Part shown: one piece after another, positions 13,458 to 64,000 of the stretch | Numbering within the stretch: position 1 is the stretch's first letter | How the letters are laid out: the number at the start of each line of letters is the position of its first letter | From: Macrostomum lignano | Lineage: Eukaryota | Reading direction: 5' to 3' | Length of the DNA stretch: 64,000 bases | Assembly (NCBI GenBank): GCA_002269645.1 | Contig: NIVC01000146.1 | Coordinates: forward strand, 186,001-250,000 | Notes under the pieces: model-generated | What the model saw: only the letters and a program-made list of their open reading frames with translations | Database searches by the model: none | What the model was told of the DNA's origin: nothing | Made by a program: the position numbers and the translations under genes

Positions 13458-13480
13458 GGGTTTAGGGTTAGGGTTAGGGT
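13458..13480 (+). repeat. Short interstitial telomere-like tract GGG-TTTAGGG-TTAGGG-TTAGGG
   Basis: Three TTAGGG copies at 13462-13479, next to the Pax6 paired-exon acceptor. Confidence 0.85.
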
Positions 13481-14512: not shown

Positions 14513-15804
14513 AGGGACCAAGCTGGATCAAGAATAATGTTTACAACAGTTATGAGTAAGACATTAGCCTACTGATTGCTCGGAGAGCACTGCAGTGCAC
14601 ACGGGGCTATTGATTTTCTCAATAAGTAGTTGCTTGGTCAGATCCATCCAAGTGGACCGTCAAGTCCTGGATCCGCCACAGAAATTCAATTTGTAAGGAA
14701 AAAGACTGATGGCGGGAGTTCTTGCTCGGGGGGGACTCACTGAGAAATAGGAGTAACTTCGACACTTTTAGGTGCTACTATATTCATATGTATACTGATG
14801 TATATACTGTAGTGTCCAGTTGAAGGTCCGGGCACCAAAAAAAGACCGCATTATCTTGACTCAATATCTCTTCTTTGCGCCCCGAGGAACTCAAAAAAAT
14901 TGGGGGGGGGGGTTAAAATAGCTAATGATAATACTCATTTATATGTGGCGCCTAGCTGACTGCCAAGACTTTGACAGCCAAGGCCGTGCCAGCTGGGGGG
15001 TGTCTGGTCAGTCACTTCATTTAGTGGCTGCTCCTGTTGTATGCCCAGCTTGCTGCATTGATACGAGTATATGGAAAGTAAAGCACAGAATGCAGCGGTT
15101 GAATCGTGAGAACGAGCCAGACCCGAAGTTTTGATCTCTTAGGCTCAAGCCCTCACCTGTAGCGGCATCAAAGACTCGAGGGCGATTCGCTCTCGCAGAA
15201 GTAGTCTGCTCTGTCAGAGCAGCGTCTCAGGGTCTCATGTCAAGTGAATGAGCATCTCTGCAAGCCATTCTTGTCGTGCTGTTAAGCACATCAAACTGTC
15301 TAAAATAGACACACTTTCTCGAACAAGCATAGCACAGTCTCCCCCCCCCCCCTACCTCAGTGTATAGCAGGTGCTCAAGCTACATTCCAGCTGAGCTACC
15401 GACTCAAATTCCCCAAGCAGGTCATGTCAAACTCGCCAGACTCAAACGGACGGCCCTCCCTTACATTTGACCCGACAAAATCGTCTTCCTGAGTCGTTGA
15501 GCGTCAGGGGCTTGCAAATTGGGCCATAAAAGCGAAGCCTTCTTGATTTTTTACCTTGTAAGGACTGTAATGCAATCCGCCCATCCCCCTGTCGCTGCAT
15601 GATCTGTGCCGGATAATGAGGGGCGGAACCAAGCAGGCCCCTGTCGCATCACTTGATAGCCCCGGGTTGATAGAAGAAAACTTGTCTCATTTTTATCGGC
15701 ATTCTCTGCATAGACTACAGAGGCTACAGCTGTCTCTATCCAATTTTTCAACATGGCGAGGCTTTGAAAATCTGCTTTGTGAGGCTCATTTTTGGGATGC
15801 TTAT

Positions 15805-16538
15805 CAGTGGCGCAACCAGAAATTTGTTGAGGGGAGAGGGCGGATTCTGGAGAATGAAGACCCGAGGGGGGCGGATTCTGGAGGGTAAAGACCCGAGAGG
15901 GGGCGGATTCTGGAGGGTAAAGACCCGAGGGGGCGGATTCTGGAGGGTAAAGACCCGAGGGGGCGGATTCTGGAGGGTAAAGACCCGAGAGGGCGGATTC
16001 TGGAGGGTAAAGACCCGAGGGGGTGGATTCTGGAGGGTTAAGACCAAAGGGGGTGGATTCTGGAGGGTAAAGACCCGAGGGGGCGGATTCTGGAGGGTAA
16101 AGACCCGAGAGGGGGCGGATTCTGGAGGGTAAAGACCCGAGAGGGGGCGGATTCTGGAGGGTAAAGACCCGAGAGGGGGTGGATTCTGGAGGGTAAAGAC
16201 CCGAGAGGGGGCGGATTCTGGAGGGTAAAGACCCGAGGGGGCGGATTCTGGAGGGTAAAGACCCGAGGGGGCGGATTCTGGAGGGTAAAGACCCGAGGGG
16301 GTGGATTCTGGAGGGTTAAGACCAAAGGGGGTGGATTCTGGAGGGTAATGACCCGAGAGGGGGCGGATTCTGGAGGGTAAAGACCCAAGGGGGGGGCGGA
16401 TTCTGGAGAGTAAAGACCCGAGGGGGGGGCGGCGGGGGGATGGCTCTGTATTTGGGCGACAACGCGCTTGGTCCCCCCTTTGACTTTTTTCAGGTCTCCG
16501 CGACCGCCCGCCCCCCCCCCCTCCTGGTTGTGCCACTG
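15805..16538. mobile_element. Non-autonomous DNA transposon (MITE-like) containing a ~30-bp minisatellite
   Basis: 15-bp terminal inverted repeats CAGTGGCGCAACCAG ... CTGGTTGTGCCACTG (one mismatch) enclose the GGCGGATTCTGGAGGGTAAAGACCCGAG array. Flanks ATGCTTAT and ATGCTGCT are only a partial 8-bp TSD, so the superfamily is unresolved. Confidence 0.65.
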
Positions 16539-16596
16539 ATGCTGCTAAGAACTAGACTAGATGAAGGGGTTCAGATTAAAGGATGCGCCGTGATCT

Positions 16597-16945
16597 CTGA
16601 AGGATCTGGTGGAGGGGAAGCGGCGCCCCCTGAAGGATCTGGTAGAGGGGAAGCGGCGCCCCCTGAAGGATCTGGTGAGGGGGAGGCGGCGCCCCCTGAA
16701 GGATCTGGTGAGGGGGAGGCGGCGCCCCCTGAAGGATCTGGTGGAGGAGGAGCGGTGCCCCCTGAAAAATCTGGTGGAGGGAAAGCGGCGCTCCCTGAAG
16801 GATCTGGTGGGGGGGGGGAGGCGGCGCCCACTGAAACCACTGAAAGATCTGGTGGGGGGGGAGGCGGCGCCCCTGAAGGATCTGGTGGGGGGGAGGCGGC
16901 ACCCACTGAAAGATCTGGTGGGGGGAGGCGGCACCCCTGAAGGAT
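16597..16945. repeat. ~33-bp minisatellite (GAAGGATCTGGTGGAGGGGAAGCGGCGCCCCCT); mirror at 61865-62460
   Basis: Direct reading. Confidence 0.92.
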
Positions 16946-17308
16946 TTGATAGAGGGAAAACGGCGCCCACAAAAGCTCACAAACGAATATCCGAGCAGTT
17001 TCGGCCACTCACCTCTCTTGGCCTTCTTTTTGCAATTCATTTCCTCCTCGGACCCGTCCGAAATGCCTGAAAATTAAATTTTGTAATTTTCAGTGAAATT
17101 TGGAGGGGGCCGCATTTATTAGGGTGGTGTAGCATGCAGTATTTCGTGTCTTGGTTGGTGCCCCTAAGTGATAGGTGGGCGCCCCTACCCCTAGCTATCA
17201 TTTTTTTTAGGGGCAATTGAGAGGATTCCTTGCCCCCACCCTGTAAGTTCATATAGGTAGGCTGATTGAGATTAAGCTTTAAGCCTTAAAAACGAAGCTA
17301 TTTCTCAC

Positions 17309-17401
17309 CTGATTTGTTTCCAAGTGGATCGGAATCCACCGCATCAAGCTGCTGCTGCTGCTGCTGTTGCTGCTGCTGTTGCTGGTGTTGATGAATCAGA
17401 A

Positions 17402-17436
<35 letters not shown>

Positions 17437-17459
17437 TGCATCATATGCAAGTGCTGCAT
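17309..17459 (-). CDS. Pax6: Pax6 first coding exon, left copy (exon begins at 17495, ATG at 17459)
   Basis: Not in the ORF track. Reads MQHLHMM-Q12-LLIHQH-Q12-LDAVDSDPLGNKS-G|GTGAGA. The phase 1 end completes the G of GHSGVNQ. The four coding exons sum to 1995 nt (664 aa plus stop). Confidence 0.8.
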
Positions 17460-18124
17460 TGCTGCTCTCCTTTTATGTCTTCTTTTAGAAGATTTCTGGG
17501 CAAATAAGGGGAATGAATTAAAATTAGGAATGAGTAAAGTTTTGTAGCCAACCTGGAAGACAGGTCAGGGTGTCAGCTAAGCTGTGGTCACTGTCCTTCA
17601 TCAGCGCTGCTCACTGGTCAGTGTGGGGGAAGCGCTGGGCATCTCCATTCCCTGCTCTGCTGTCTTCCTGCCGACTGACAAAATACAGAATTTTTATATT
17701 GCTTGTATTGTCAGCTTACAAGCGCAGTCAGGGCTCACCTCTGTGCCTTGGGGTGGGGCTGGCAATGGCAAGCAAAGAATTTGGAGTCCCGCTTCTTTTG
17801 ATGCAGGAGCTCAGCCTCCTCCCTCCCCGCTGAACTGCTTGCCTTGTCCTCTCTCCACCGATCAAAGCTGCTCAGAGAGAGACTCAAAGTTGGCCCAGCC
17901 AATGGCATGAGTATAACAACTGCGTGCTCAGCACCCCCGGTCCCAAGCGCCTTTTGTCCAAGCTTTTGTTGTTCAAGTTGACCAGCGCTGGGAGCCAATG
18001 AGAGCCAATGATAGCCAATGAGATCCCTTCCAAGTTTTCGGGTCATTCAATGCAAGTTTAGCTCAAGCTTTTTCTTGGGAAAGGGAAAAGAGATTTGCGT
18101 GGAATAGAATTATAAACTTTGTAG

Positions 18125-18690
18125 TCAGACAGGGGTAGACAGGGGTAGACAGGGAGTCAGACAGGGAGTTAGACAGGGAGTCAGACAGGGAGTCAGACAG
18201 GGAGTCAGACAGGGAGTCAAACAGGGAGTCAGACAGGGAGTCAGACAGGGAGTCAGACAGGGAGTCAGACAGGGAGTCAGGTAGGGGTAGACAGGGAGTC
18301 AGGTAGGGGTAGACAGGGAGTCAGGTAGGGGTAGACAGGGAGTCAGACAGGGAGTCAGAAAGGGAGTCAGACAGTGTCAGTGAGTAAGACAGGGAGTCAG
18401 GTAGGGGTAGACAGGGAGTCAGGTAGGGGTAGACAGAGAGTCAGACAGTGAGTCAGACAGGGAGTCAGGTAGGGGTAGACAGAGAGTCAGACAGGGAGTC
18501 AGACAGGGAGTCAGACAGTGAGTCAGACAGGGAGTCAGACAGGGAGTCAGACAGGGAGTCAGACAGGGAGTCAGGTAGGGGTAGACAGGGAGTCAGGTAG
18601 GGGTAGACAGAGAGTCAGACAGGGAGTCAGACAGGGAGTCAGACAGGGGTAGACAGGGAGTCAGACTGTGGTAGACATTGCGTCAGACAG
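18125..18690. repeat. 12-bp minisatellite (AGTCAGACAGGG); longer mirror at 59740-60700
   Basis: Direct reading. Confidence 0.96.
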
Positions 18691-20257
18691 CGGAGCGACC
18701 TATTCTAGAGCATCTTATTCCTAACTCTTGTGTCCTAGACCTTTATACATTATATATTTTCTCCAAAAAAAGCAAACCAGATAAAGCAACGGGAAACCAG
18801 ATACCCAGTTATTTTCTATTATTCCAAAAACGCAAAAATCGAAAAGCTGCATGAAATTTTTTTACCAGTCCGAGAATCCCATCTCCTTAGCAACTAAAAA
18901 AACCTTACAGACTGACCATCTGACAGGCAAAAGAGCAGCTTATCTAATCGGAATGTGAAAACTTGACTCCTGTTAATTGCAGGCAGGCAAATCCTGTATC
19001 TGAGCAAAAGACTAATTAATTAAGTATAGGAAAATTAGCCTGACAGACCATGGGTCCAGTTTCCAACCATCATTATGAAGGCAGCATGGGACTGCCCGGA
19101 CAGAAACTTAGTGAATCTGTTAACGCTGCTATAGTGAGGCTATTTAACTGGATAATAGTGCCTCGGATACTAACAGGCATAACATGGGTGTGTGCCCTGA
19201 GGCGAAATAAAACCTCAAAAATGCATGTTATATAAGGCTACAGGATTTAAGCATTATGGCAGCTTGCTAAATTAGTAATCTAAGTATATGGATTAGTATG
19301 CTTTCAGATGCAGGCTGCAAGAGGTCTGGAAGTGTGAAGTGCTCATTTCCTGAGCACAGCAGAGGCCGAGGACCCGGGGCTCCATCGAACTTCAATCGAG
19401 ACTTGAGAGTGGCCTCTGGCTGCATCCATGGGCAGTTGAATTCCAGAGCTTCCAGCTTGCAATTATGTTTTTATTTGCGAGTAATTTCTTCTCTGGACCG
19501 GTTAAATGGGGGTTTAGTTTTTACAATCGAGACCAACCGTCAACCCAATGAACCTTGGCTTTAAACTTGGCTTCAGCCATTATCCAAATTAAACAGACCC
19601 AACAAGATTAGTAGCACTACTTGCGCAACACACTACTACTCCACTGTCAGTAGTAGTATAGATTGAGCATGAAGTTTCGAATTTAAAATGAATCTGAACT
19701 GCAGAGTTGGTCTCCCTCGCCAGCTCGCCTTGGAAATTCAACTCGTTTCGAACTATACTGCGGTAGAACAAGCAATGGATCATAATTTCCACAAAATTTG
19801 AATAGTTAGATAAATCAATCCGAAATAAATTTGTGTACAAATTTGACTTTAATACTCGCTAAAATCTGGAACTGGTCTCAACTCTCGAATCAAATAAATT
19901 ACCGAGCTTGAGTCTGGTGTCAAATTCGCGGGAAAATATCTAAAGGCTGAAGGATAACCTCGCACTACTTTACTAATAGTACAGTGCCGGCTGGCCTGAT
20001 CTTCCAGAGGTACCGTGCATGCATTTCAACTCCAAAGGCCGCGAATTGCCTGAAAAAAGCAGGCAAGCAGAAAGGGGAAAAAGGGAGAAGAAGACTGTGG
20101 CGCGGGCCCCCGGGGTCGGGAGTCAGTCCTGGTGTCCTGGCACACTGCCCCCCCCCCATCCCTGGCTTCGGTCCGCCCCTCCCACAGCGGGGCAGTCGCA
20201 GCCCCGGCAGCGGTACAAAAGAAGCAGAAAAGAAGAAGTTTCCATGTGGCTACTTAC

Positions 20258-20375
20258 CTGTGAGAAGCGAATGAGGCCGTCAGAGCGGTTGAGGGCGCCG
20301 GGCGCAAGTCAGGCAGACGGGCAAGGCAAGTGGCGCGGAAGCGGGATGGGGTTGGGCCGCTGCGGCCTGCGACTG
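20258..20375 (-). other. Pax6: Putative Pax6 5' UTR exon, left copy (5' end approximate)
   Basis: Consensus donor CAG|GTAAGT at 20257, in the Pax6 orientation, at the end of a GC-rich promoter-like block. No usable ORF. Confidence 0.45.
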
Positions 20376-20620
20376 TTTTATTCGCATGAGGAGGAAGGGA
20401 GAGCGGAGCGCGGCAGAGGAGGGGGCGGCCCGCCTCGCCTCAGCGAATCGAAAGAAGGTGGCGCGCCCGAAATTGATGATTGAGCACGGATGGGCCCGCG
20501 CAATGAGGCGCGGTTAATGCAAAGCCCAGTGGACTGAACTGCCGCCACACAGGCTTCTGCGTCTGAGTACGAGTCCCCCCGCTACCATTGGCTGCGACAA
20601 GCCTGCCGGGCCAGCCAATC
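20376..20620 (-). promoter_or_regulatory. Putative Pax6 promoter, left copy
   Basis: Two oppositely oriented CCAAT boxes (20587-20591, 20615-20619), GC-rich sequence and an AATAAAA TATA-like motif at 20376-20382 upstream of the putative UTR exon. Confidence 0.4.
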
Positions 20621-20769
20621 AGCGGCCAGGGACATCTTCTGTCTGCCTGCCGGCAACCCAGCGTTTTGCGAATCTTTTGAGTCTCGCCGGCTTGAGAATT
20701 CAACTGGCAATATTTTATATTTGTGTTGAGTGCCAGTCTGCAGCTATGTGTTTGCTTGCCATAGCATTT

Positions 20770-21555
20770 CCCATCTCTAAACTACACCCATTCTATTCTC
20801 TAAACTGCACTATTCTATCTCTAAACTGCACTATTCTATCTCTAAACTACACCCATTCTATCTCTAAACTGCACTATTCTATCTCTAAACTGCTCCGACT
20901 CTATCTCTAAACTGCACCCCATTCTATCTCTAAACTGCACCCCATTCTATCTCTAAACTGCACTATTCTATCTCTAAACTGCACTATTCTATCTCTAAAC
21001 TGCACCCCATTCTATCTCTAAACTGCACTATTCTATCTCTAAACTGCTCCGACTCTATCTCTAAACTGCACCCCATTCTATCTCTAAACTGCACTATTCT
21101 ATCTCTAAACTGCTCCGACTCTATCTCTAAACTGCACCCCATTCTATCTCTAAACTGCACTATTCTATCTCTAAACTGCACTATTCTATCTCTAAACTGC
21201 ACCCCATTCTATCTCTAAACTGCACTATTCTATCTCTAAACTGCACTATTCTATCTCTAAACTGCACTATTCTATCTCTAAACTGCACCCCATTCTATCT
21301 CTAAACTGCATCCAATTCTGTCTCTAAACTGAATCCTCCTCTCCGGTCTCTCCCCCTTTCTCCCTCTCTCTGCCTCCCTCTCTCTGTCTCCCTCTCTCTG
21401 TCTCCCTCTCTCTGTCTCCCTCTCTCTGTCTCCCTCTCTCTGTCTCCCTCTCTCTGCCTCCCTCTCTCTGTCTCCCTCTCTCTGTCTCCCTCTCTCTGTC
21501 TCCCTCTCTCTGTCTCCCTCTCTCTGTCTCCCTCTTTCTGCCTCCCTCTCGCAGT
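20770..21555. repeat. 21-bp minisatellite (TATTCTATCTCTAAACTGCAC) followed by a 14-bp CT-rich repeat; mirror at 56905-57645
   Basis: Direct reading. Confidence 0.96.
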
Positions 21556-22659
21556 CTCTCTTACATCCTCTCAGACCCCAGCTCCGTAATTTCAAAAATA
21601 TGCTTATATACTGAATCTGAATCTGAAAACTCGATTCATCCCATCAACTATGCCATACCATATAGGCCAAAAATATAAATAACACAATAAATATAGTAGC
21701 TGCATCATTTCATACAGCCGTTCCGCTCTTTACACAGAACTGCATGGCTTATCGACAAATTTTATTGCGCTTATCGGAGAGACAGAGAGAGAGGAGAGAG
21801 AGAGTGAAATCTCACCGCACCGGGTAGGGGGGAGGTTATCAGTTGCCAGGGATCTCTGAGATTTGAGATTAATGCCCCGGTGTGCAGCGGTGGGCGGAGG
21901 AGGTCAATAAGTCGCTCCCCCGCTCCCCATCCCGCGCCAACCCCCCCCCCCCCCCCAATTTGATTTCACACACGGCTGGCGAAGCGGCAGGCTATTTCTG
22001 CATTATTCAGAGCAGCCAAAGTATTTTATAGAGAAAGGGAAAAAGCAAGCCTGCATTTTGAAACGGACACAGAAATTTTATTCGCGCAGAATCGAGTATA
22101 GGAGAGAGTAATGGAATGACAGCGCGACCCCCCCCCCCCTACTCAAAATGAAGTCACCCGATCATAATCGAGGCACAATGTCTTGACAAGCTTATAAAAC
22201 TGTTTTGATTGTAGATTTTTATACATTTTAGCGCCGGGAGTTTCTCCCTGGATGAGCCCGAGACATCAGCAGTTTTATGCCCTCGAGGGCGCATGACTGC
22301 GGGAGCTGCTCAAGGCTTCTGGCTTGAGTTAAACTCCCGCTCAGCAGGTCCCTATAAACAAAAATAGCGAGCATTTCAGTCAACTGCTGCCTTGAGGGGG
22401 GAGTAGGAATTGAGTTTCAATGGCCAGTTTTTCACCGCAATATTAAATATCAACAACTGTAATTGAATTTTAACTCAATGATCATCTGTGTGCGTTCGTT
22501 TATGGGGCATGTTTTGTTGGCAATAAAAACACCCGTCTGCCTCCGTCCAGCCACTCTATCGCTAAAAGTTGCGCAATTGATAACATGACTTGACTTTTTG
22601 CTGTAGCTTTTGCATATGCATTCCATAACTCGTGGCTCTGGTGAATACGAGACCCTTTG

Positions 22660-23640
22660 TATCCTGACCCATTCTATCCTTGACCCATTCTATCCTGACC
22701 CATTCTATCCTTGACCCATTCTATCCTGACCCATTCTATCCTGACCCATTCTATCCTGACCCATTCTATCCTGACCCATTGTATCCTGACCCATTGTATC
22801 CTGACCCAGTCTATCCTGACCCAGTCTATCCTGACCCATTCTATCCTGACCCATTCTATCCTGACCCATTCTATCCTGACCCATTGTATCCTGACCCATT
22901 CTATCCTGACCCATTCTATCCTGACCCATTCTATCCTGACCCATTCTATCCTGACCCATTGTATCCTGACCCATTGTATCCTGACCCATTGTATCCTGAC
23001 CCATTCTATCCTGACCCATTCTATCCTGACCCATTCTATCCTGACCCATTCTATCCTGACCCATTCTATCCTGACCCATTCTATCCTGACCCATTCTATC
23101 CTGACCCATTCTATCCTGACCCATTCTATCCTGACCCATTCTATCCTGACCCATTCTATCCTGACCCATTCTATCCTGACCCATTCTATCCTGACCCATT
23201 CTATCCTGACCCATTCTATCCTGACCCATTCTATCCTGACCCATTCTATCCTGACCCATTCTATCCTGACCCATTCTATCCTGACCCATTCTATCCTGAC
23301 CCATTCTATCCTGACCCATTCTATCCTGACCCATTCTATCCTGACCCATTCTATCCTGACCCATTCTATCCTGACCCATTCTATCCTGACCCATTCTATC
23401 CTGACCCATTCTATCCTGACCCATTCTATCCTGACCCATTCTATCCTGACCCATTCTATCCTGACCCATTCTATCCTGATCCACTAAATCCTGACCCACT
23501 AAATCCTGACCTGCTAAATCCTGACCCACTAAATCCTGACCCACTAAATCCTGACCTGCTAAATGCTGACCCACTAAATCCTGACCCACTAAATCCTGAC
23601 CTGCTAAATCCTGACCCACTATATCCCGACCTACTTAAAT
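22660..23640. repeat. 15-bp minisatellite (CTGACCCATTCTATC); mirror at 54900-55820
   Basis: Direct reading. Confidence 0.98.
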
Positions 23641-25494
23641 CCCTATATTGCAAAGACTCAATCAGAGTCTTATTGTCACTGCCGTCTGCAGTGCTATGTT
23701 GGCATGCAAGGATAACAAAGGCAGTTTAGTTTGGTCATAAGTGTGAATTTGTTGGGCAAAGTCACACCTATGAGCAGCGTATAGAAACTGTGAAAGGATT
23801 AACTTGCGGCCACTGTGGAGTACGAGGCGGTCAGTAACAAACAATAATCTGCTCGAATCCTCTTGTTTATCTGGTCAAGCGGGCCCCATACTGCATGGCT
23901 GTTAGCGGATTAAAGCTCGCATCTGTGATGGCCAAACTCATTAGCGAGTTATGCAAACTCAGTTTTTTGTCACTGTTAAATCCGAGCTGTTGCCATGCAG
24001 AACTGCAATCGCGCTTCCTTCTCTCCAGATTCGAACTTGGAGTTGGAAAGAAATTTAGTAAAGAAAAAAAAAATTTTTTACTTGAAACTGCGCCATGCAC
24101 TGAGAACGGAGCTGGCCGAAGGAAGAGAAGAGAGACAAACAGCTACTGCGCTGGATACACAAGTAGCTCGCCACTGTCGCCATAGCAACCGCGGCATCAA
24201 TTTCTTAGGGCGAATCTCTTTTTTTAAAAATGTAATGTAGCAAAAGCAGTTCAAATGATATAATGTATGAAATGTATAGTCGTGACTTTCTTCTCAAATA
24301 TTGAGGACGCGCAGGTCGCCACGTGGGCAGAAGCAGCAGCAGCACTGGCTGATGCGAAATTGCGAGCTGAGATTGCGAGTCCAGGCAAGCGGAAGAATGG
24401 AAACTCAGAAGAGCTCAGAGTCAGTCAGAGAAGAGAGCTGCATGCCCCGACTCCGATGCAGTTGGAAACTTTGCTTTCGGGCGAGAGGTGGGGGGTGGCA
24501 GAGTCTCTCCTGAGCTCCCCGGCTGTCTCTGCGCTGTCACCGCCAGAGGCCTGCCAAAATCCCATGACCTCATTATGCTAATGCGCGACCCACCAGAAAT
24601 CTCCTGCAGTTGCCAAGCCGCTGGGGCACTTGATTAAAAATTCAAATCAGCTGCGGACACAAGAGGATTCTGGATGGCCAATCTCCATCCCTCAGTTCCT
24701 CATCAAAGCTTTAACCCTTCAGCATTTGGAATCGATCCATCTCAGCCCGAGCAGAGGCTGCTGACTGATGGAGCCGGCCGGCCCTGTGCTTCCCTGCTCG
24801 AGACATGAAAAAAACAACACACACGCACAAAATCATTTCTGCCGTCTCCAAGACCTAACTGAATAATTAATGAAGAGCATATTATTATTGTTAAACAACA
24901 AACTCCTCTTTGTAGACTTGATTCATGATCGACTGGCTTGAGTAGTTTCACAAAATGGCGCAAAGTCAAGATTTGAGAATCTGGGGGGGGGGGGCATGGC
25001 GTGATCAACATCGCGTGTTGGCCGGTTTTATGCCAGTTTCGTGCGGTCTAAAATATGGGTAGAGACGGACCAAAGGGATTCTTCTGTAGGACCGGTGGCG
25101 GGCGAGCGACCATCGACGGAATCCCGAAGCCCAGTCTCTTTTGTCAGCTGGTTATCTTGGGGGGGGGGCATTGGTTACCTACTCTGCACGCTATGCGGCC
25201 TCAGCTGCCACCCACTGGCCTTGGAGACTCCTTGGATTGAAAATCTGGGGACTCGGAGCAAATCTCTACGGTGCTAAACCGACTTTGAGCAGGGGGTCAT
25301 TATCGGATTATTCGAGCGTAAGGCAGGCCGGCAGTGGCGGAGAAGAACTGAGGGCCAAGTGAGACAGGGCAGCTCAGATCTCCAGACTCTCGCAAATCGC
25401 CATCGCTCTGATATTGAGGCGGATGAGATATGACTTTTCAGGGCCAAAGCCGCTACGGCTATCTGCAATCTGCAGGGAAGTTGAGTGACTTACA

Positions 25495-26000
25495 GCTATC
25501 TACCCCTGTCCACTCTTGCATCCTACTCTACCTACTTCCAATTCTCTCTCCACTTTCTACACCCTACTCTACCTACTTCCCTTTCTCTCTCCACTTTCTA
25601 CACCCTACTCTACCTACTCCCCCCTCTCTCTCCACTTTCTACACCCTACTCTACCTACTTCCCCTTCTCTCTCCACTTTCTACACCCTACTCTACCTACC
25701 TACCCTTCTCTCTCCACTTTCTACACCCTACTCTACCTACCTACTCTTCTCTCTCCACTCTCACAGCCTACTCTACCTACCTACCCTTCTCTCTCCACTC
25801 TCACAGCCTACTCAACCTACCTACCCTTCTCTCTCCACTCTCACAGCCTACTCAACCTACCTACCCTTCTCTCTCCACTCTCACAGCCTACTCAACCTAC
25901 CTACCCTTCTCTCTCCACTCTCACAGCCTACTCAACCTACCTACCCTTCTCTCTCCACTCTCACAGCCTACTCAACCTACCTACCCTTCTATATCCACTC
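25495..26000. repeat. ~40-bp pyrimidine-rich minisatellite (CTACCTACCCTTCTCTCTCCACTCTCACAGCCTACTCAAC); mirror at 52625-53060
   Basis: Direct reading. Confidence 0.93.
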
Positions 26001-40190: not shown

Positions 40191-40199
40191 TACAAGCCT

Positions 40200-52200: not shown

Positions 52201-55200
52201 TTCCCACAGCTCTCCGCATCCCCAACACACAAATTAGCAGAGGCTTGGGATAAATGCACCTCGCAGAATTATCCTCCTTCTCTTCACCGGCGCCCCTCCT
52301 GCGGGTTTCCCATGAGCAGCTTCCTGCAGCCTCTCCGGGGCCTTCGTCTGTCATTTGCCTTTCGTTTCCAGGCTTCTCAGCCCACCTGCATTCCGCAATC
52401 AGCGGCGCCCCGGCTCATCCCCAACTCGCGGGCCTGTGCCGCCAGGCGAGCGGAAAATCAGGTTAAAGGGAAAAATGCCCCGCGGGATGTTTTTGCGACT
52501 GCTGCGCGTAAATGTAAAAATTCTTTTCTCCTCTTTGCTGCGCGCGGCTTCTGTTTTGCTGGCAATCGATCTGCCCTGCGAGACTGCGCTGGGATGCTAG
52601 ATTGGGACACAGAGAGAGAAGCGAGTGGACAGAGAAGGGTAGGTAGGTTGAGTAGGCTGTGAGAGTGGATAAAGAAGGGTAGGTAGGTAGAGTAGGGTGT
52701 GAGAGTGGAGAGAGAAGGGTAGGTAGGTTGAGTAGGCTGTGAGAGTGGATAAAGAAGGGTAGGTAGGTTGAGTAGGCTGTGAGAGTGGAGAGAGAAGGGG
52801 AAGTAGGTAGAGTAGGGTGCAGGAGTGCATGGAGAGAGAAGGGTAGGTAGGTAGAGTAGGGTGCAAGAGTGCATGGAGAGAGAAGGGTAGGTAGGTAGAG
52901 TAGGGTGCAGGAGTGCATGGAGAGAGAAGGGTAGGTAGGTAGAGTAGGGTGCAGTAGTGCATGGAGAGAGAAGGGTAGGTAGGTAGAGTAGGGTGCAAGA
53001 GTGCATGGAGAGAGAAGGGTAGGTAGGTAGAGTAGGGTGTAAGAATGGACGGGGGGTAGATAGCTGTAAGTCATTCAACTTCCCTGCAGGTTGCAGATTG
53101 CCGTAGCGGTTTTGGCCCTGAAAAGTCATATCTCATCCGCCTCAATATCAGAGCGATGGCGATTTGCGAGAGTCTGTAGATCTGAGCTGCCCTGTCTCAC
53201 TTGGCCCTCAGTTCTTCTCCGCCACTGCCGGCCTGCCTTACGCTCGAATAATCCGATAATGACCCCCTGCTCAAAGTCGGTTTAGCACCGCAGAGATTTG
53301 CTCCGAGTCCCCAGATTTTCAATCCAAGGAGTCTCCAAGGCCAGTGGGTGGCAGCTGAGGGCGTATAGCGTGCAGAGTAGGTAACCAATGCCCCCCCCAA
53401 GATAACCAGCTGACAAAAGAGACTGGGCTTCGGGATTCCGTCGATGGTCGCTCGCCCGCCACCGGTCCTACAAAAGAATCCCTTTGGTCCGTCTCTACCC
53501 ATATTTTAGACCGCACGAAACTGGGATAAAACCGGCCAACACGCGATGTTGATCACGCCATGCCCACCCACCCCCCCCCAGATTCTCAAATCTTGACTTT
53601 GCGCCATTTTGTGAAACTACTCAAGCCAGCCGATCATGAATCAAGTCTACAAAGAGGAGTTTGTTGTTTAACAATAATAATATGCTCTTCATTAATTATT
53701 CAGTTAGGTCTTGGAGACGGCAGAAATGATTTTGTGCGTGTGTGTTGTTTTTTTAATGTCTCGAGCAGGGAAGCACAGGGCCGGCCGGCTCCATCAGTCA
53801 GCAGCCTCTGCTCGGGCTGAGATGGATCGATTCCAAATGCTGAAGGGTTAAAGCTTTGATGAGGAACTGAGGGATGGAGATTGGCCATCCAGAATCCTCT
53901 TGTGTCCGCAGCTGATTTGAATTTTTAATCAAGTGCCCCAGCGGCTTGGCAACTGCAGGAGATTTCTGGTGGGTCGCGCATTAGCATAATGAGGTCATGG
54001 GATTTTGGCAGGCCTCTGGCGGTGACAGCGCAGAGACAGCCGGGGAGCTCAGGAGAGACTCTGCCACCCCCCACCTCTCGCCCGAAAGCAAAGTTTCCAA
54101 CTGCATCAGAGTCGGGGCATGCAGCTCTCTTCTCTGACTGACTCTGAGCTCTTCTGAGTTTCCATTCTTCCGCTTGCCTGGACTCGCAATCTCAGCTCGC
54201 AATTTCGAGTCAGCCAGTGCTGCTGCTTTTGCCCACGTGGCGACCTGCGCGTCCTCAATATTTGAGAAGAAAGTCACGACTATACATTTCATACATTATA
54301 TCATTTGAACAGTTTTGGCTACATTTAAAAAAAGATTCGCCCTAACAAATTGATGCCGCGGTTGCTATGGCGACAGTGGCGAGCTACTTGTGTATCCAGC
54401 GCAGTAGCTGTTTGTCTGTTCTCTTCCTTCGGCCAGCTCCGTTCTCAGTGGCGCAGTTTCAAGTAAAATAATCTTTTCTTTCTTTACTAAATTTCTTTTC
54501 CAACTCCAATTTCGAATCTGGAGAGAAGGCAGCAGTTCTGCATGGCAACAGCTCGGATTAACAGTGACAAAAAACTGAGTTTGCATAACCCGCTAACGAG
54601 TTTGGCCATCACAGATGCGAGCTTTAATCCGCTAACAGCCATGCAGTATGGGGCCCGCTTGGCCAGATAAACAAGAGGATTCATGCAGATTATTGTTTGT
54701 TACTGACCGCCTTGTACTCCACAGTGGCCGCAAGTTAATCCTTTCACAGTTTCTATACGCTGCTCATAGGTGTGACTTTGCCCAACAAATTCACACTTAT
54801 GACCAAACTAAACTGCCTTTGTTATCCTTGCATGCCAACATAGCACAGACGGCAGTGACAATAAGACTCTGATTGAGTCTTTGCAATATAGGGACTTAAG
54901 TAGGTCGGGATATAGTGGGTCAGGATTTAGCAGGTCAGGATTTAGTGGGTCAGGATTTAGTGGGTCAGGATTTAGCAGGTCAGGATTTAGTGGGTCAGGA
55001 TTTAGTGGATCAGGATAGAATGGGTCAGGATAGAATGGATCAGGATAGAATGGGTCAGTATAGAATGGGTCAGAATACAATGGGTCAGGATACAATGGGT
55101 CAGGATACAATGGGTCAGGATAGAATGGGTCAGGATAGAATGGGTCAGAATACAATGGGTCAGGATACAATGGGTCAGGATACAATGGGTCAGGATAGAA

Positions 55201-57797
55201 TGGGTCAGGATAGAATGGGTCAGGATAGAATGGGTCAGGATAGAATGGGTCAGGATAGAATGGGTCAGGATAGAATGGGTCAGGATAGAATGGGTCAGGA
55301 TAGAATGGGTCAGGATAGAATGGGTCAGGATAGAATGGGTCAGGATAGAATGGGTCAGGATAGAATGGGTCAGGATAGAATGGGTCAGGATAGAATGGGT
55401 CAGGATAGAATGGGTCAGGATAGAATGGGTCAGGATAGAATGGGTCAGGATAGAATGGGTCAGGATAGAATGGGTCAGGATAGAATGGGTCAGGATAGAA
55501 TGGGTCAGGATAGAATGGGTCAGGATAGAATGGGTCAGGATAGAATGGGTCAGGATACAATGGGTCAGGATACAATGGGTCAGGATAGAATGGGTCAGGA
55601 TAGAATGGGTCAGGATAGAATGGGTCAGGATAGAATGGGTCAGGATAGAATGGGTCAGGATAGAATGGGTCAGGATAGAATGGGTCAGGATAGAATGGGT
55701 CAGGATACAATGGGTCAGGATAGAATGGGTCAGGATAGAATGGGTCAGGATAGAATGGGTCAGGATAGAATGGGTCAGGATAGAATGGGTCAGGATAGAA
55801 TGGGTCAGGATACAATGGGTCTCGTATCACCAGAGCCACGAGTTATGGAATGCATATGCAAAAGCTACAGCAAAAAGTCAAGTCATGTTATCAATTGCGC
55901 AACTTTTAGCGATAGAGTGGCTGGACGGAGGCAGAAGGGTGTTTTTATTGCCAACAAAACATGCCCCATAGACGAACGCACACAGATGATCATTGAGTTA
56001 AAATTCAATTACAGTTGTTGATATTTAATATTGCGGTGAAAAACTGGCCATTGAAACTCAATTCCTACTCCCCCCTCAAGGCAGCAGTTGACTGAAATGC
56101 TCGCTATGTTTGTTTATAGGGACCTGCTGAGCGGGAGTTTAACTCAAGCCAGAAGCCTTGAGCAGCTCCCGCAGTCATGCGCCCTCGAGGGCATAAAACT
56201 GCTGATGTCTCGGGCTCATCCAGGGAGCTAACTCCCGGCGCTAAAATGTATAAAAATCTACAATCAAAACAGTTTTATAAGCTTGTCAAGACATTGTGCC
56301 TCGATTATGATCGGGTGACTTCATTTTGAGTAGGGGGGGGGGTCGCGCTGTCATTCCATTACTCTCTCCTATACTCGATTCTGCGCGAATAAAATTTCTG
56401 TGTCCGTTTCAAAATGCAGGCTTGCTTTTTTCCCTTTCTCTATAAAATACTCTGGCTGCTCTGAATAATGCAGAAATAGCCTGCCGCTTCGCCAGCCGTG
56501 TGTGAAATCAAATTGGGGGGGGGGGGTGGCGCGGGATGGGGAGCGGGGGAGCGACTTATTGACCTCCTCCGCCCACCGCTGCACACCGGGGCATTAATCT
56601 CAAATCTCAGAGATCCCTGGCAACTGATAACCCCCCCCCTACCCGGTGCGGTGAGATTTCACTCTCTCTCTCCTCTCTCTCTCTGTCTCTCCGATAAGCG
56701 CAATAAAATTTGTCGATAAGCCATGCAGTTCTGTGTAAAGAGCGGAACGGCTGTATGAAATGATGCAGCTACTATTTATTGTGTTATTTATATTTTTGGC
56801 CTATATGGTATGGCATAGTTGATGGGATAAATCGAGTTTTCAGATTCAGATTCAGTATATAAGCATATTTTTGAAATTACGGAGCTGGGGTCTGAGAGGA
56901 TGTAAGAGAGACTGCGAGAGGGAGGCAGAAAGAGGGAGACAGAGAGAGGGAGACAGAGAGAGGGAGACAGAGAGAGGGAGGCAGAGAGAGGGAGAAAGGG
57001 GGAGAGACCGGAGAGGAGGATTCAGTTTAGAGACAGAATTGTATGCAGTTTAGAGATAGAATGGGGTGCAGTTTAGGGATAGAATTGGGTGCAGTTTAGA
57101 GATGGAATAGTGCAGTTTAGAGATAGAATAGTGCAGTTTAGAGATAGAATAGTGCAGTTTAGAGATAGAATGGGGTGCAGTTTAGAGATAGAATAGTGCA
57201 GTTTAGAGATAGAATAGTGCAGTTTAGAGATAGAATGGGGTGCAGTTTAAAGATAGAATGGGGTGCAGTTTAGAGATAGAGTCGGAGCAGTTTAGAGATA
57301 GAATAGTGCAGTTTAGAGATAGAATAGTGCAGTTTAGAGATAGAATGGGTGTAGTTTAGAGATAGAATAGTGCAGTTTAGAGATAGAATAGTGCAGTTTA
57401 GAGATAGAATGGGGTGCAGTTTAGAGATAGAATCGGAGCAGTTTAGAGATAGAATGGGTGTAATTTAGAGATAGAATAGTGCAGTTTAGAGATAGAATAG
57501 TGCAGTTTAGAGATAGAATGGGGTGCAGTTTAGAGATAGAATCGGTGCAGTTTAGAGATAGAATGGGTGTAGTTTAGAGATAGAATAGTGCAGTTTAGAG
57601 ATAGAATAGTGCAGTTTAGAGATAGAATAGTGCAGTTTAGAGATAGGAAATGCTATGGCAAGCAAACACAAAGCTGCAGACTGGCACTCAGCACAAATAT
57701 AAAATATTGCCAGTTGAATTCTCAAGCCGGCGAGAATCAAAAGATTCGCAAAACGCTGGGTTGCCGGGAGGCAGACAGAAGATCTCCCTGACCGCTG

Positions 57798-58041
57798 ATT
57801 GGCTGGCCCGGCAGGCCTGTCGCAGCCAATGGTAGCGGGGGGACTCGTACTCAGACGCAGAAGCCTGTGTGGCGGCAGTTCAGTCCACTGGGCTTTGCAT
57901 TAACCGCGCCTCATTGCGCGGGCCCATCCGTGCTCAATCATCAATTTCGGGCGCGCCACCTTCTTTCGATTCGCTGAGGCGAGGCGGGCCGCCCCCTCCT
58001 CTGCCGCGCTCCGCTCTCCCTTCCTCCTCATGCGAATAAAA
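57798..58041 (+). promoter_or_regulatory. Putative Pax6 promoter, right copy
   Basis: Mirror of the left promoter: ATTGG 57798, CCAAT 57826, AATAAAA 58035. Confidence 0.4.
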
Positions 58042-58043
58042 CA

Positions 58044-58161
58044 GTCGCAGGGCCCGCAGCGGCCCAACCCCATCCCGCTTCCGCGCCACTTGCCTTGCCC
58101 GTCTGCCTGACTTGCGCCCGGCGCCCTCAACCGCTCTGACGGCCTCATTCGCTTCTCACAG
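58044..58161 (+). other. Pax6: Putative Pax6 5' UTR exon, right copy (5' end approximate)
   Basis: Mirror of 20258-20375, with donor CAG|GTAAGT at 58162. Confidence 0.45.
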
Positions 58162-61100
58162 GTAAGTAGCCACATGGAAACTTCTTCTTTTCTGCTTCTT
58201 TTGTACCGCTGCCGGGGCTGCGACTGCCCCGCTGTGGGAGGGGCGGACCGAAGCCAGGGATGGGGGGGGGGCAGTGCGCCAGGACACCAGGACGGGACAT
58301 TATCCCCGCCACTGACTCCCGACCCCGGGGGCCCGCGCCGCAGTCTTCTTCTCCCTTTTTCCCCTTTCTGCTTGCCTGCTTTTTCAGGCAATTCGCGGCC
58401 TTTGGAGTTGAAATGCATCATGCACGGTACCTCTGGAAGATCAGGCCAGACGGCACTGTACTATTAGTAAAGTAGTGCGAGGTTATCCTTCAGCCTTTAG
58501 ATATTTTCCCGCGAATTTGACACCAGACTCAAGCTCGGTAATTTATTTGATTCGAGAGTTGAGACCAGTTCCAGATTTTAGCGATATCCAAATTTGTACA
58601 CAAATTTATTTCGAAATGATTTATCTAACTATTCGAATTTTGTGGAAATTATTATTCATTGCTAGTTCTACCGTAGTATAAATAGTTCGAAACGAGTTGA
58701 ATTTCCAAGGCTGCCAAGACTGCCAAGACTGCAATCCAACTCTGCAGTTCAGATTCATATTAAATCCGAAATTTCATGCTCAATCTATACTACTACTGAC
58801 AGTGGAGTAGTAGTGTGTTGCGCAAGTAGTGCTACTAATATTGTTGGGCCTGTTTAATTTGGATAAAGGCTGAAGCCAAGTTTAAAGCCAAGGCTGATTG
58901 GGTTGACGGTTAGTCTCTATTGTAAAATCTAAACCCCCATTTAACTAGTCCAGAGAAGAAATTACTTGCAAATAAAAACATAATTGCAAGCTGGAAGCTC
59001 TGGAATTTAGCTGTCCATGGATGCAGCCAGTAGCCACTCTCAAGTCTCGATTGAACTTCGATGGAGCCCCGGGTCCTCGGCCTTTGCTGTGCTCAGGAAA
59101 TGAGCACTTCACACTTCCAGACCTCTTGCAGCCTGCATCTGAAAGCATACTAATCCATATACTTAGATTACTAATTTAGCAAGCTGCCATAATAGTAAAT
59201 CCTGTAGCCTTATATAACATGCATTTTTGAGGTTTTATTTGGCCTCAGGGCACACACCCATGTTATGCCTGTTAGTATCCGAGAGCAGTGTTAACAGATT
59301 CACTAAGTTTCTGTCCGGGCAGTCCCATGCTGCCTTCATAATGATGGTTGGAAACTGGACTCATGGTCTGTCAGGCTAATTTTCCTACTTAATTAATTAG
59401 TCTTTTGCTCAGAAACTGCACAGGATTGCCTGCCTGCAATTAACAGGAGTCAAGTTTTCACATTCCGATTGGATGAAGCTGCATGGCGGTTGGCTGTTGC
59501 TCTTTTGCCTGTCAGATGGTCAGTCTGTAAGGTTTTTTTAGTTGCTAAGGAGATGGGATTTTCGGACCGGTAAAAAAATTCATGCAGCTTTTCAATTTTT
59601 GCGTTTTCGGAATAACAGAAAATAACCGGGTATCTGGTTTCCCGTTGCGATGGTTTGCTTTTTTGGAGAAAATATATAATGAATAAAGGTCTGGGACACA
59701 AGAGTTAGGAATAAGATGCTCTAGAATAGGTCTCTCCGCTGTCTGACTCCCTGTCGACTCCCTGTCGACTCCCTGTCGACTCCCTGTCTGACTCCCTGTC
59801 TGACTCCCTGTCTGACTCCCTGTCGACTCCCTGTCGACTCCCTGTCTGACTCCCTGTCTGACTCCCTGTCTGACTCCCTGTCGACTCCCTGTCGACTCCC
59901 TGTCTGACTCCCTGTCTGACTCCCTGTCTGACTCCCTGTCTGACTCCCTGTCTGACTCCCTGTCTGACTCCCTGTCTGACTCCCTGTCTGACTCCCTGTC
60001 TGACTCCCTGTCTGACTCCCTGTCTGACTCCCTGTCTGACTCCCTGTCTGACTCCCTGTCTGACTCCCTGTCTGACTCCCTGTCTGACTCCCTGTCGACT
60101 CCCTGTCGACTCCCTGTCTGACTCCCTGTCTGACTCCCTGTCTGACTCCCTGTCTGACTCCCTGTCTGACTCCCTGTCTGACTCCCTGTCTGACTCCCTG
60201 TCTGACTCCCTGTCTGACTCCCTGTCTGACTCCCTGTCTGACTCCCTGTCTGACTCCCTGTCTGACTCCCTGTCTGACTCCCTGTCTGACTCCCTGTCTG
60301 ACTCCCTGTCTGACTCCCTGTCTGACTCCCTGTCTGACTCCCTGTCTGACTCCCTGTCTGACTCCCTGTCGACTCCCTGTCTGACTCCCTGTCTGACTCC
60401 CTGTCTGACTCCCTGTCTGACTCCCTGTCGACTCCCTGTCTGACTCCCTGTCTGACTCCCTGTCTGACTCCCTGTCGACTCCCTGTCTGACTCCCTGTCT
60501 GACTCCCTGTCTGACTCCCTGTCCACCCCTGTCTGACTCCCTGTCCACCCCTGTCTGACTCCCTGTCCACCCCTGTCTGACTCCCTGTCCACCCCTGTCT
60601 GACTCCCTGTCCACCCCTGTCTGACTCCCTGTCCACCCCTGTCTGACTCCCTGTCCACCCCTGTCTGACTCCCTGTCTGACTCCCTGTCCACCTCTGTCT
60701 GACCACAAAGTTTCTAGTTCCATTCCATGCAAATCTATTCTTTTCTTCCCAAGAAAAAGCTTGAGCTAAACTTGCATTGAATGACCCGAGAACTTGGAAG
60801 GGATCTCATTGGCTCTCATTGGCTCCCAGCGCCGGTCAACCTGAACAACAAAAGCTTGGACAAAAGGCGCTTGGGACCGGGGGTGCTGAGCACGCAGTTG
60901 TTATACTCATGCCATTGGCTGGGCCAACTTTGAGTCTCTCTCTGAGCAGTTTTGATCGGTGGAGAGAGGACAAGACAAGCAGTTCAGCGGGGAGGGAGGA
61001 GGCTGAGCTCCTGCATCAAAAGAAGCGGGACTCCAAATTCTTTGCTTGCCATTGCCAGCCCCACCCCAAGGCACAGAGGTGAGCCCTGACCGCGCTTGTA

Positions 61101-61358
61101 AGCTGACAATACAAGCAATTTAAAAATTCTGTATTTTGTCAGTCGGCAGGAAGGCAGCAGAGCAGGGAATGGAGATGCCCAGCGCTTCCCCCACACTGAC
61201 CAGTGAGCAGCGCTGATGAAGGACAGTGACCACAGCTTAGCTGACACCCTGACCTGTCTTCCAGGTTGGCTACAAAACTTTACCCATTCCTAATTTTAAT
61301 TCATTCCCCCCATTTGCCCAGAAATCTTCTAAAAGAAGACATAAAAAGGAGAGCAGCA

Positions 61359-61378
61359 ATGCAGCACTTGCATATGAT

Positions 61379-61425
<47 letters not shown>

Positions 61426-61515
61426 TTCTGATTCATCAACACCAGCAACAGCAGCAGCAGCATCAGCAGCAGCAGCTTGATGCGGTGGACTCCGATCCAC
61501 TTGGAAACAAATCAG
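61359..61515 (+). CDS. Pax6: Pax6 first coding exon, right (mirror) copy (exon begins at 61322)
   Basis: Inverted copy of 17309-17459: MQHLHMM-Q15-LLIHQH-Q6HQ4-LDAVDSDPLGNKS-G|GTGAGA, with intact acceptor and donor. The downstream exons would lie beyond nt 64000. Confidence 0.72.
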
Positions 61516-62520
61516 GTGAGAAATAGCTCCGTTTTTAAGGCTAATATAATTTGGAGCTTAATCTCAATCAGCCTACCTATGAACTTACGGGGGGAAAGGA
61601 ATCCTCTCAATTGCCCCAAAAAATAGTGATAGCTAGGGGTAGGGGCGCTCACCTATCACTTAGGGGCTCCAACCAAGACACGAAATACTGCATGCTACAC
61701 TACACCACCCTAATGATTGCGGCCCCCTCCAAATTACACTGGAAATTACAAAATTTAATTTTCAGGCATTTCGGACGGGTCCGAGGAGGAAATGAAGTGC
61801 AAAAAGAAGGCCAAGAGAGGTGAGTGGCCGAAACTGCTCGGATATTCGTTTGTGAGCTTTTGTGGGCGCCGCTTCCCCTCCACAAGATACGAGTACTTCA
61901 GGGGCGCCGCTTCCCCTCTACCAGATACTTCAGGGGGCGCCGCTTCCCCTCTACCAGATACTTCAGGGGGCGCCGCTTCCGCCCACCAGATCCTTCAGGG
62001 GGCGCCACTTCCCCTCCTCCAGATCCTTCAGGGGGCGCCGCTTCCCCCACCAGATCCTTCAGGGGGCGCCGCTTCCCCCACCAGATCCTTCAGGGGGCGC
62101 CGCTTCCCCCACCAGATCCTTCAGGGGGTGCCGCTTCCCCCACCAGATCCTTCAGGGGGCGCCGCCTCCCTTTCACCAGATCCTTCAGTGGAGGCGCCGC
62201 TCCCCCCCCACCAGATCCTTCAGTGGGCGCCACTTCCCCTCCAAGCAGATCCTTCAGTGGGCGCCACTTCCCCTCCAAGCAGATCCTTCAGGGGGCGCCA
62301 CTTCCCCTCCCAGCAGATCCTACAGGGGGCGCCACTTCCCCTCCCAGCAGATCCTTCAGGGGGCGCCACTTCCCCTCCCAGTAGATCCTTCAGGGGGCGC
62401 CACTTCCCCTCCCAGCAGATCCTTCAGGGGGCGCCGCTTCCCCTCCACAAGATCCTTCAGTGGGCACGGCGCATCCTTTAATCTGAACCCCTTCATCTAG
62501 AGTCTAGTTCTTAGCAGCAT

Positions 62521-63053
62521 CAGTGGCGCAACCAGGAGGGGGGGGCGGGCGGTCGGAGACCTGAAAAAAGTCAATGGGGGGACCAAGCGCATTGTCGCCA
62601 AAATACAGAGCCACCCCCCGCTCCCCCTCGGGTCTTTACCCTCCAGAATCCGCCCCCCTCGGGTCTTAACCCTCCAGAATCCGCCCCCGGGTCTTTACCC
62701 CCCAGAATTCGCCCCCCCTTGGGTCTTTACCCTCCAGAATCCACCCCTTGGGTCTTAACCCTCCAGAATCCGCCCCCTCGGGTCTTTACCCTCCAGAATC
62801 CGCCCCCCTCGGGTCTTAACACTCCAGAATCCGCCCCCTTGGATCTTTACCCTCCAGAATCCGCCCCCTTGGATCTTTACCCTCCAGAATCCGCCCCCCT
62901 CTGGTCTTTACCCTCCAGAATCCGCCCCCTGGGGTCTTTACCCTCCAGAATTCGCCCCCCTCTGGTCTTTACCCTCCAGAATCCGCCCCCATTTGGGTCT
63001 TTACCCTCCAGAATCCGCCCTCTCCCCTCAACAAATTTCCGGCTGCGCCACTG
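62521..63053. mobile_element. Mirror copy of the MITE-like element, with fewer internal repeats
   Basis: CAGTGGCGCAACCAG at 62521 and CCGGCTGCGCCACTG ending at 63053. Confidence 0.65.
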
Positions 63054-64000
63054 ATAAGCATCCCAAAAATGAGCCTCACAAAGCAGATTTTCAAAGCCTC
63101 GCCATGTTGAAAAATTGGATAGAGACAGCTGTAGCCTCTGTAGTCTATGCAGAGAATGCCGATAAAAATGAGACAAGTTTTCTTCTATCAACCCGGGGCT
63201 ATCAAGTGATGCGGCAGGGGCCCTGGGTTCCGCCCCTAATTATCCGGCACAGATCATGCAGTCACAGGGGGATGGGCGGATTGCATTACCGTCCTTACAA
63301 GGTAAAAAATCAAGAAGGCTTCGCTTTTATGGCCCAATTTGCAAGCCCCTGACGCTAAACGACTCAGGAAGACGATTTTGTCGGGTCAAATGTAAGGGAG
63401 GGCCGTCCGTTTGTGTCTGGCGAGTTTGACATGACCTGCTTGGGGAATTTGAGTCGGGAGCTCAGACCTAGGCTGGAATGTAGATGGAGCACCTGCTATA
63501 CACTGAGGTAGGGGGGACTGTGCTATGCTTGTTCGAGAAAGTGTGTCTATTTTAGACAGTTTGATGTGCTTAACAGCACGACAAGAATGGCTTGCAGAGA
63601 TGCTCATTCACTTGACATGAGACCATGAGACGCTGCTCTGACAGAGCAGACTACTTCTTCTGCGAGAGCGAATCGCCCTCGAGTCTTTGATGCCGCTATA
63701 GGTGAGGGCTGAGCCTAAGAGATCAAAACTTCGGGTCTGGCTCGTTCTCACGATTCAACCGCTGCATTCGGTGCTTTACTTTCCATATATCAATGCAGCA
63801 AGCTGGGCATACAACAGGAGCAGCCACTAGATGAAGTGACTGACCAGACACCCCAGCTGGCACGGCCTTGGCTTGTCAAAGTCTTGGCAGTCAGCTAGGC
63901 GCCACATATAAATTAGTATTATCATTAGCTATTTTAACCCCCCCCCAATTTTTTTTGAGTTCCTCGGGGCGCAAAGAAGAGATATTGAGTCAAGATAATG

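Follow-up and report, generated by a model that had tools for sequence, protein, structure and literature searches.

The window analysed here is the whole 64,000-nucleotide (nt) stretch at positions 186,001 to 250,000 of contig NIVC01000146.1 in the Macrostomum lignano assembly GCA_002269645.1. It contains a gene of the Pax6 family whose 5' end lies in one arm of a very large inverted repeat, with the same 5' end found a second time, in opposite orientation, in the other arm. The original prediction for this DNA presented the arrangement as a giant palindrome placing two Pax6 copies head to head, with the caveat that two haplotypes or homeologues scaffolded in opposite orientation would look the same. 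Here, we describe the gene, the repeat and the gap at its centre, and argue that the mirror image probably arose during assembly, when two versions of a single Pax6 locus were joined to each other.

The Pax6 gene and its second 5' end

The gene model was built from a tblastn search with human PAX6 and a reading of the splice sites, combined for the 5' exons with a scan for start codons, reading-frame phase and donor sites. The search matched three exons on the minus strand, all to the left of position 14849, where the visible part of the inverted repeat begins. Most of the paired domain is encoded by exon 3 (13105-13451), where residues 5-122 match at 86% identity (13449-13096) without an intervening intron. 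The last residues of the paired domain are encoded in exon 4 (10297-10636) together with the linker, and exon 5 (8758-9914) carries the homeodomain, a poly-Q/H/A tail, the C-terminal QYWTRVA and the stop codon, with residues 202-275, which span the homeodomain, being 85% identical to human PAX6.

A homology search of the arms did not find the first coding exon, which was instead recovered by the scan. Coding exon 1 of the left copy (17309-17459, minus strand) encodes the poly-Q-containing sequence MQHLHMMQ(n)...GNKS and ends in phase 1 at the donor AG/GTGAGA. It is followed 243 nt downstream by coding exon 2, a micro-exon of 54 nt (17066-17013, minus strand; interval 17013-17066) that encodes GISDGSEEEMNCKKKAKR; it came from the same scan and is validated by its homology to the N-terminus of DjPax-6 from Dugesia japonica. 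We regard exon 1 as validated because it is conserved between the two arms and because the micro-exon beside it is homologous to DjPax-6.

Joined together, the five exons form an open frame of 682 residues. Its PAX domain is complete (PF00292, E=3e-69, covering positions 1-125 of the 125 in the profile), and downstream of it lies a paired-type homeodomain (PF00046, E=2e-22). The gene is compact, with its five coding exons contained in 8.7 kilobases (kb) of the minus strand (8758-17459) and its homeodomain undivided. Among the 120 best matches listed from a protein search, the named proteins were Pax6, Pax-6-like or twin of eyeless, or else were otherwise unnamed entries that a second source gives as Pax6, and a few matches were nameless; no near-identical Pax6 was found in the search of 5.8 billion proteins. 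The widest alignment among the named matches listed was to DjPax-6, for which the BLASTP alignment begins exactly at the micro-exon (ISDGSEEEMNCKKKAKRGHSG against MTESNEDEIKNKKKVKRGHSG) and reaches 76% identity over 182 amino acids. The two proteins have in common the N-terminal motif KKKxKRGHSG, the linker motif SNExQRHL and the C-terminus YWTxVA. Judged by its paired domain, its homeodomain and its best relatives, the predicted gene is an ordinary Pax6 family gene.

The 682-residue protein also contains long poly-Q, poly-H/Q, poly-A and poly-G tracts, which are unusual for Pax6 and set it apart from other flatworm Pax6 proteins. At the DNA level, the introns of the gene are filled with minisatellites, namely 27.6 copies of a 39-mer at 10653-11729 and 35 copies of a 20-mer at 12384-13086, the latter array beginning 19 nt downstream of the donor of the paired-domain exon. 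On the other side of that exon, within 10 nt upstream of its acceptor, stand three perfect telomere-type CCCTAA repeats (13462-13479, minus strand), the only such run in the window and one that appeared in 0 of 100 shuffles.

In the right arm, alignment of the arms and the scan for start codon and donor place coding exon 1 at 61359-61515 on the plus strand, and arm alignment places coding exon 2 at 61766-61819 on the same strand. Compared with the left copy, the right exon 1 has 9 nt more and 3 nt less within its CAG run, one Q to H replacement and one synonymous change, all in frame, and exon 2 has a single N to K replacement. The AG/GT splice sites of both 5' coding exons are intact in both arms. 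The claim that each arm carries the first coding exon of Pax6 with its splice sites intact therefore stands, with the amendment that there are two coding exons per arm and not one; the head-to-head orientation is likewise borne out, as the 5' exons lie on the minus strand in the left arm and on the plus strand in the right. The mirror of the paired-domain exon (13451-13105), which lies outside the visible left arm, would be at about 65.4 kb, beyond the window, in agreement with the earlier prediction.

Upstream of exon 1 lies a putative intron (17544-17747, minus strand) that would separate it from a non-coding 5' exon, with a donor, CACAGAG/GTGAGC, within 17747-17731 and an acceptor, TCTTCCAG/GT, within 17563-17544. 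This donor and acceptor pair is conserved in the right arm (61070-61273) and is the sole basis for a candidate untranslated exon and promoter in each arm.

An inverted repeat around an assembly gap

Self-alignment of the 64-kb window on the minus strand yields a single colinear chain, which pairs 14849 with 64000 and runs inward to about 38884 paired with 40592. The left arm contains 14 non-repeat segments that add up to 12.6 kb. Searched singly, all 14 had a partner, in colinear order, at the expected place in the right arm, and this per-segment comparison revealed no private insertion in either arm. Direct alignment to the right arm likewise found a match for 16900-18200, and for 36563-37600 it gave 0 substitutions over 1,039 nt. 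From the chain and the segment matches, the left arm occupies 14849-39010, where the left contig ends, and the right arm 40570-64000, where it reaches the window edge. The inverted repeat that had been proposed is present in the assembly, far beyond chance. Its left limit is the mirror of the window's final base and is thus set by the window edge; within the window no outer boundary of the symmetry is visible, and the earlier estimate that the arms are at least 24 kb long holds.

In other respects the earlier description needs revision. The arms are not plain reverse complements of one another, since they differ by 208 substitutions in 12,625 aligned non-repeat nt (1.65%), by 89 further insertion or deletion (indel) events and by the unequal length of their repeat arrays. 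The right arm begins at about 40570 and not at 40550, the 762 nt at 39808-40569 being found in the right contig only, and the upstream DNA in each arm, counted from the start codon to the contig end, amounts to about 21.5 kb, where about 18 kb had been given.

The sole link between the arms is an assembly gap of 797 N (39011-39807), the only run of Ns in a window that is otherwise fully sequenced, and the centre is in this sense just what it had been said to be. Compared on the same strand, the flanks of the gap have no similarity, no overlap and no continuity, and there is no coding sequence near the centre and hence no reading frame to preserve across it. If there is an axis of symmetry, it falls wholly within the Ns.

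The two contigs meet the gap in different kinds of sequence. The left contig ends inside a higher-order minisatellite (37570-39010, plus strand) detected by Tandem Repeats Finder (TRF), in which 22-nt units are arranged with a period of about 309 nt and which continues up to the gap; in the right arm, the mirror array (40570-42345) has a period of 301 nt. The right contig ends in a polypurine tract, its first bases (39808-40165, plus strand) being 358 nt of 100% purine (A 0.46, G 0.54, no C or T) that contain a 26-nt GA-rich repeat and have no partner in the left arm. Such a tract is likely to form triplexes and to block both polymerases and assembly. Between the tract and the start of the arm lie about 400 nt of AT-rich unique sequence (40166-40569, plus strand), which match only themselves in the window and are either a spacer or sequence that the left contig failed to reach.

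With 797 N and a further 762 nt between them, the arms stand at least 1.56 kb apart across sequence that has no symmetry, and cruciform formation, which had been suggested for the palindrome, would for this reason be unlikely even were the structure real. One candidate sign of a fold-back, derived from the alignment, was that the gap might equal the mirrored overhang of the right contig. It was rejected, as landmarks near the contig end imply an overhang of 644-1122 nt; the two lengths had seemed to agree exactly because the diagonal had been taken where a gapped alignment of minisatellites begins.

Two zones of divergence between the arms

The differences between the arms are not spread evenly along them. 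Segment alignments define an outer zone of the left arm at 14849-31034 (mirror 48628-64000) that holds 207 of the substitutions, at 0.7-5.2% per segment and about 2.06% overall, together with indels of 5, 6, 10 and 18 nt. They also define an inner zone at 31200-39010 (mirror 40570-48462) that is effectively identical between the arms. In the part of the inner zone from 31200 to 37569, the 2,566 non-repeat nt contain a single substitution, at 31482, which corresponds to about 99.96% identity. The remaining differences in its non-repeat sequence are one-base shifts in homopolymer length (for example G4/G3, C5/C4 and T4/T5), the usual residue of long-read consensus error, and a 2.8-kb array of a 29-mer within the zone differs between the arms by one block of 175 nt (about six units), 12 single-base gaps and 8 mismatches. 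The switch from divergence to identity is abrupt and falls at about 31.0-31.5 kb. The inner 8 kb or so of both contigs is one sequence written twice, because it shows only one substitution in 2,566 nt, homopolymer shifts and small array differences, and the outer 16 kb or so is two truly different versions.

Tandem repeats make up 46% of each arm. All of the minisatellite families found by TRF are common to both arms, and the arrays are of unequal length, with left and right copy numbers that range from nearly equal (55.8/55.4, 10.3/10.3 and 43.3/40.3) to very unequal (46.7/81.8). The most unequal of these pairs is a 12-mer array that adjoins the putative Pax6 promoter on its upstream side, with 46.7 copies at 18123-18666 against 81.8 at 59734-60689. 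The DNA beside it is among the most diverged in the arms, with 5.2% substitutions over the 99 nt at 18024-18122 and 3.3% at 18671-20771.

The positions of the contig ends can be set against this pattern. Counted from the last variants that distinguish the two versions, the distance to the contig end is 7.5-8.1 kb on the left and 8.4-9.0 kb on the right.

Origin of the mirror image

We consider it probable, at roughly three chances in four, that the window contains one Pax6 locus, of which two alleles or homeologues were joined tail to tail during assembly, and that the second copy is a false duplication. Of the two possibilities raised at the outset, a giant real palindrome has no support beyond the scaffold join itself, and the caveat about oppositely oriented haplotypes or homeologues is favoured by all of the features that can be tested. 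It is favoured because there is a gap between the copies, because the copies are completely colinear, because their divergence is mosaic and at the level of alleles, and because the contigs end about one long-read length past the point at which they become identical. A mosaic of 0-5.2% divergence that turns abruptly to identity is the pattern of a heterozygous block beside a homozygous block.

The sequence of events would be as follows. The sequenced material would have carried two versions of one Pax6 locus, either alleles or homeologous or haplovariant copies of the kind found in polyploid Macrostomum, which over the 5' end of the gene and about 13 kb upstream of it differ, as observed, by about 2% substitutions, small indels and minisatellite lengths. 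Because the versions differ in these ways, a long-read assembler would have kept them as two contigs. Beyond about 31.2 kb, where the versions are identical, the only reads able to extend a given contig would probably have been those with an anchor in the part where it varies, and each contig does come to a halt 7.5-9 kb further on, the left in a minisatellite of 1.5-1.8 kb and the right in the 358-nt polypurine tract. A scaffolder may then have placed these two ends of shared sequence tail to tail, with 797 N as the estimated gap, as in the precedent of Adineta vaga, and so produced the mirror image. The second Pax6 copy predicted beyond 64 kb would, on this account, be the other allele of the same gene.

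The literature provides both the background and the precedents for such an event. The co-resident genome copies of M. lignano have a single-nucleotide polymorphism divergence of 1.39-2.41% (PMC10733133), and the divergence of the arms, 1.65-2.06%, falls inside this range. In canu assemblies of two Macrostomum species, sister species of M. lignano, residual heterozygosity caused haplotypes to be assembled separately, and Purge Haplotigs was needed (PMC10468722), and the scaffolded M. lignano reference contains 180 megabases of duplicated blocks that are at least 95% identical (PMC5730564). False heterotype duplications were described by Ko et al. 2022 in Genome Biol (PMC9516828), who recognise them by a gap between the duplicated pair, half depth, haplotype-specific k-mers and discordant read pairs. 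The present case resembles theirs in having adjacent, near-identical copies on one scaffold and an apparent gene gain; a gap lies between the pair, and the copies are fully colinear with a divergence at the level of heterozygosity (1.65% overall, 2.06% in the outer zone). It differs in that the present pair is inverted, a word that occurs 0 times in the text of that paper.

Inverted pairs are the rule in the second precedent. In the 2013 assembly of A. vaga, 23 of 25 homologous blocks on the same scaffold were palindromic (PMC5916493), and all 20 of the palindromes that were re-examined collapsed to non-palindromic regions in a chromosome-level assembly (bioRxiv 10.1101/2020.06.16.155473). In that assembly, scaffolded palindromes of homologous blocks had been taken as biology and were later invalidated, although the organism belongs to another phylum and was sequenced with another technology. 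The present contigs are clearly derived from long reads, because they resolve minisatellites of several kb and contain homopolymer noise.

Several points weigh on the other side. The decisive criteria, namely depth, k-mer multiplicity and spanning molecules, belong to the level of reads, and the case for an artefact made here is drawn from the assembled sequence. Simple paired-read logic does not predict that haplotigs are joined tail to tail; a join of this kind needs links that carry no orientation (linked reads or Hi-C), fold-back chimeric long reads or an error of the scaffolder, which must have had some evidence for making it. A real palindrome with a spacer of up to about 1.6 kb would have the same geometry, and an identity that rises toward the centre is expected from arm-to-arm gene conversion at the centre as well.

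These points lead to the main alternative, which we think unlikely, namely that the Pax6 locus has undergone a real inverted segmental duplication, in which a short spacer lies between two Pax6 genes, whole or partial, that are transcribed outward from it. Recent gene conversion between the arms would have homogenised their inner 8 kb or so, and since reads over a near-perfect inverted repeat resemble chimeric hairpin reads, the centre is where the assembler would have broken the sequence. Such a duplication would fit the decision of the scaffolder to place the contigs in mirror orientation with a finite gap estimate, the peak of identity beside the centre and the 5' exons and splice sites that are intact and in frame in both copies; a spacer could be provided by the 762 nt found in the right contig alone, and macrostomid genomes are known to be highly rearranged (PMC10733133). 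Against it stands the fact that no sequenced base crosses the centre. It also needs two histories, an old duplication for the outer zone at about 2% divergence and a recent conversion of at least 8 kb for the identical inner zone, where the allele model needs one. Neither arm has content of its own, and no outer boundary is visible. Published cases of duplicate-gap-duplicate arrangements and of homologous blocks scaffolded as palindromes have base rates that point to an artefact, and a palindromic arrangement of Pax6 is not reported in the flatworm literature that was searched.

Ampliconic palindromes with arm-to-arm gene conversion offer a further comparison. The human Y palindromes P1-P8 consist of large gene-bearing inverted arms around a short spacer, are about 99.9% identical or more throughout and are covered by spanning clones. 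The present structure is similar in its gene-bearing inverted arms around what would be a short spacer and in the comparable identity of its inner 8 kb, but the identity of its outer 16 kb is no more than about 98%, and its centre is not spanned. Gene-converting palindromes are expected to be uniformly near-identical, and the arms examined here, in their non-repeat sequence, are instead about 99.96% identical over the inner 8 kb and about 97.9% over the outer 16 kb. In planarians, pax6A and pax6B are old and dispersed paralogues. The two copies in this window, at about 2% divergence, are unlike that pair and would be either alleles or a very recent duplicate. Should the join be correct after all, which we doubt, the window would show part of a palindromic duplication of at least 48 kb, with two intact Pax6 genes head to head across a spacer of less than 2 kb. 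Its inner 8 kb or so would be kept alike by conversion, and its promoters and 5' exons would be diverging in poly-Q length and by the Q to H and N to K replacements.

The remaining possibility, which we regard as very improbable, is that both arms are one fold-back, produced when sequencing passed along one strand of a single molecule and returned along the other, through a missed adapter or a template-complement chimera. False PacBio palindromes of raw-read length, 7-17 kb, are described by Ko et al. (PMC9516828), the inner zone of about 8-9 kb per arm is identical apart from homopolymer noise, and the link used in scaffolding could have come from reads of this kind. The outer 16 kb, however, has 207 substitutions, multi-base indels, codon-level exon changes and large differences in array length, and a fold-back origin of both arms is rejected because two strands of one molecule cannot carry such variants. 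The arms, at 24 kb or more each, also exceed typical chimeric read lengths, and there is no fold-back axis in the sequenced bases because nothing in the assembled left end is complementary to the 358-nt pure-purine start of the right contig. A fold-back would explain at most the join and not the duplication.

Other features of the window

The window as a whole has an extreme density of minisatellites. Tandem repeats make up 42% of it and belong to about 35 families with periods of 12-324 nt (for example at 5691-7021, 10653-11729, 22660-23498 and 33775-36608). The interval 3904-4375 is occupied by about 88 copies of (CTGA)n, a microsatellite with a 99% match, and directly after them by about 31 copies of (CTGT)n.

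A single-exon open reading frame (ORF) at 2506-3492 on the plus strand encodes a 328-residue protein with a caspase domain (PF00656, E=5e-11) and the active-site motifs SAHG and QSCRG. Its only detectable homologue is a Macrostomum lignano protein of 44% identity, which is encoded at a locus nested in an IP3-receptor-like gene and not syntenic with the window. That locus contains no Pax6 and no repeats in common with the window, and with 48% G+C and 28% tandem repeats, against 53% and 42% here, it is of the same genome style. In GC-rich non-repeat DNA nearby, two ORFs overlap on opposite strands, one of 319 residues at 4640-5599 on the plus strand and one of 376 residues at 4493-5623 on the minus strand. 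Neither has a Pfam match, and no homologue of the 319-residue protein was found in the protein collection; its C-terminus may resemble that of RECQL4. Within the arms, a Pfam search with eight of the longest non-repeat ORFs gave no match, and there were no Rfam matches and no tRNAs.

Implications for Pax6 and for flatworm genomes

Taken at face value, the mirror image would be scored as the duplication of a master regulator of eye and brain together with mirrored regulatory DNA, and it would feed as such into gene-family counts, synteny and claims about genome architecture. The history of A. vaga illustrates the risk, as its 'palindromes' were taken as evidence for ameiotic evolution and were later shown to be assembly errors. 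The signature of the artefact is a gap at the axis, full colinearity, mosaic divergence at the level of alleles and the ending of both contigs about a read length past the point where they converge. Once it is recognised, no spurious gain of a Pax6 gene is inferred and the scaffold can be marked for haplotig purging. As a by-product, the analysis provides a clean five-exon model of a flatworm Pax6 gene and what would be two natural allelic variants of its N-terminus.

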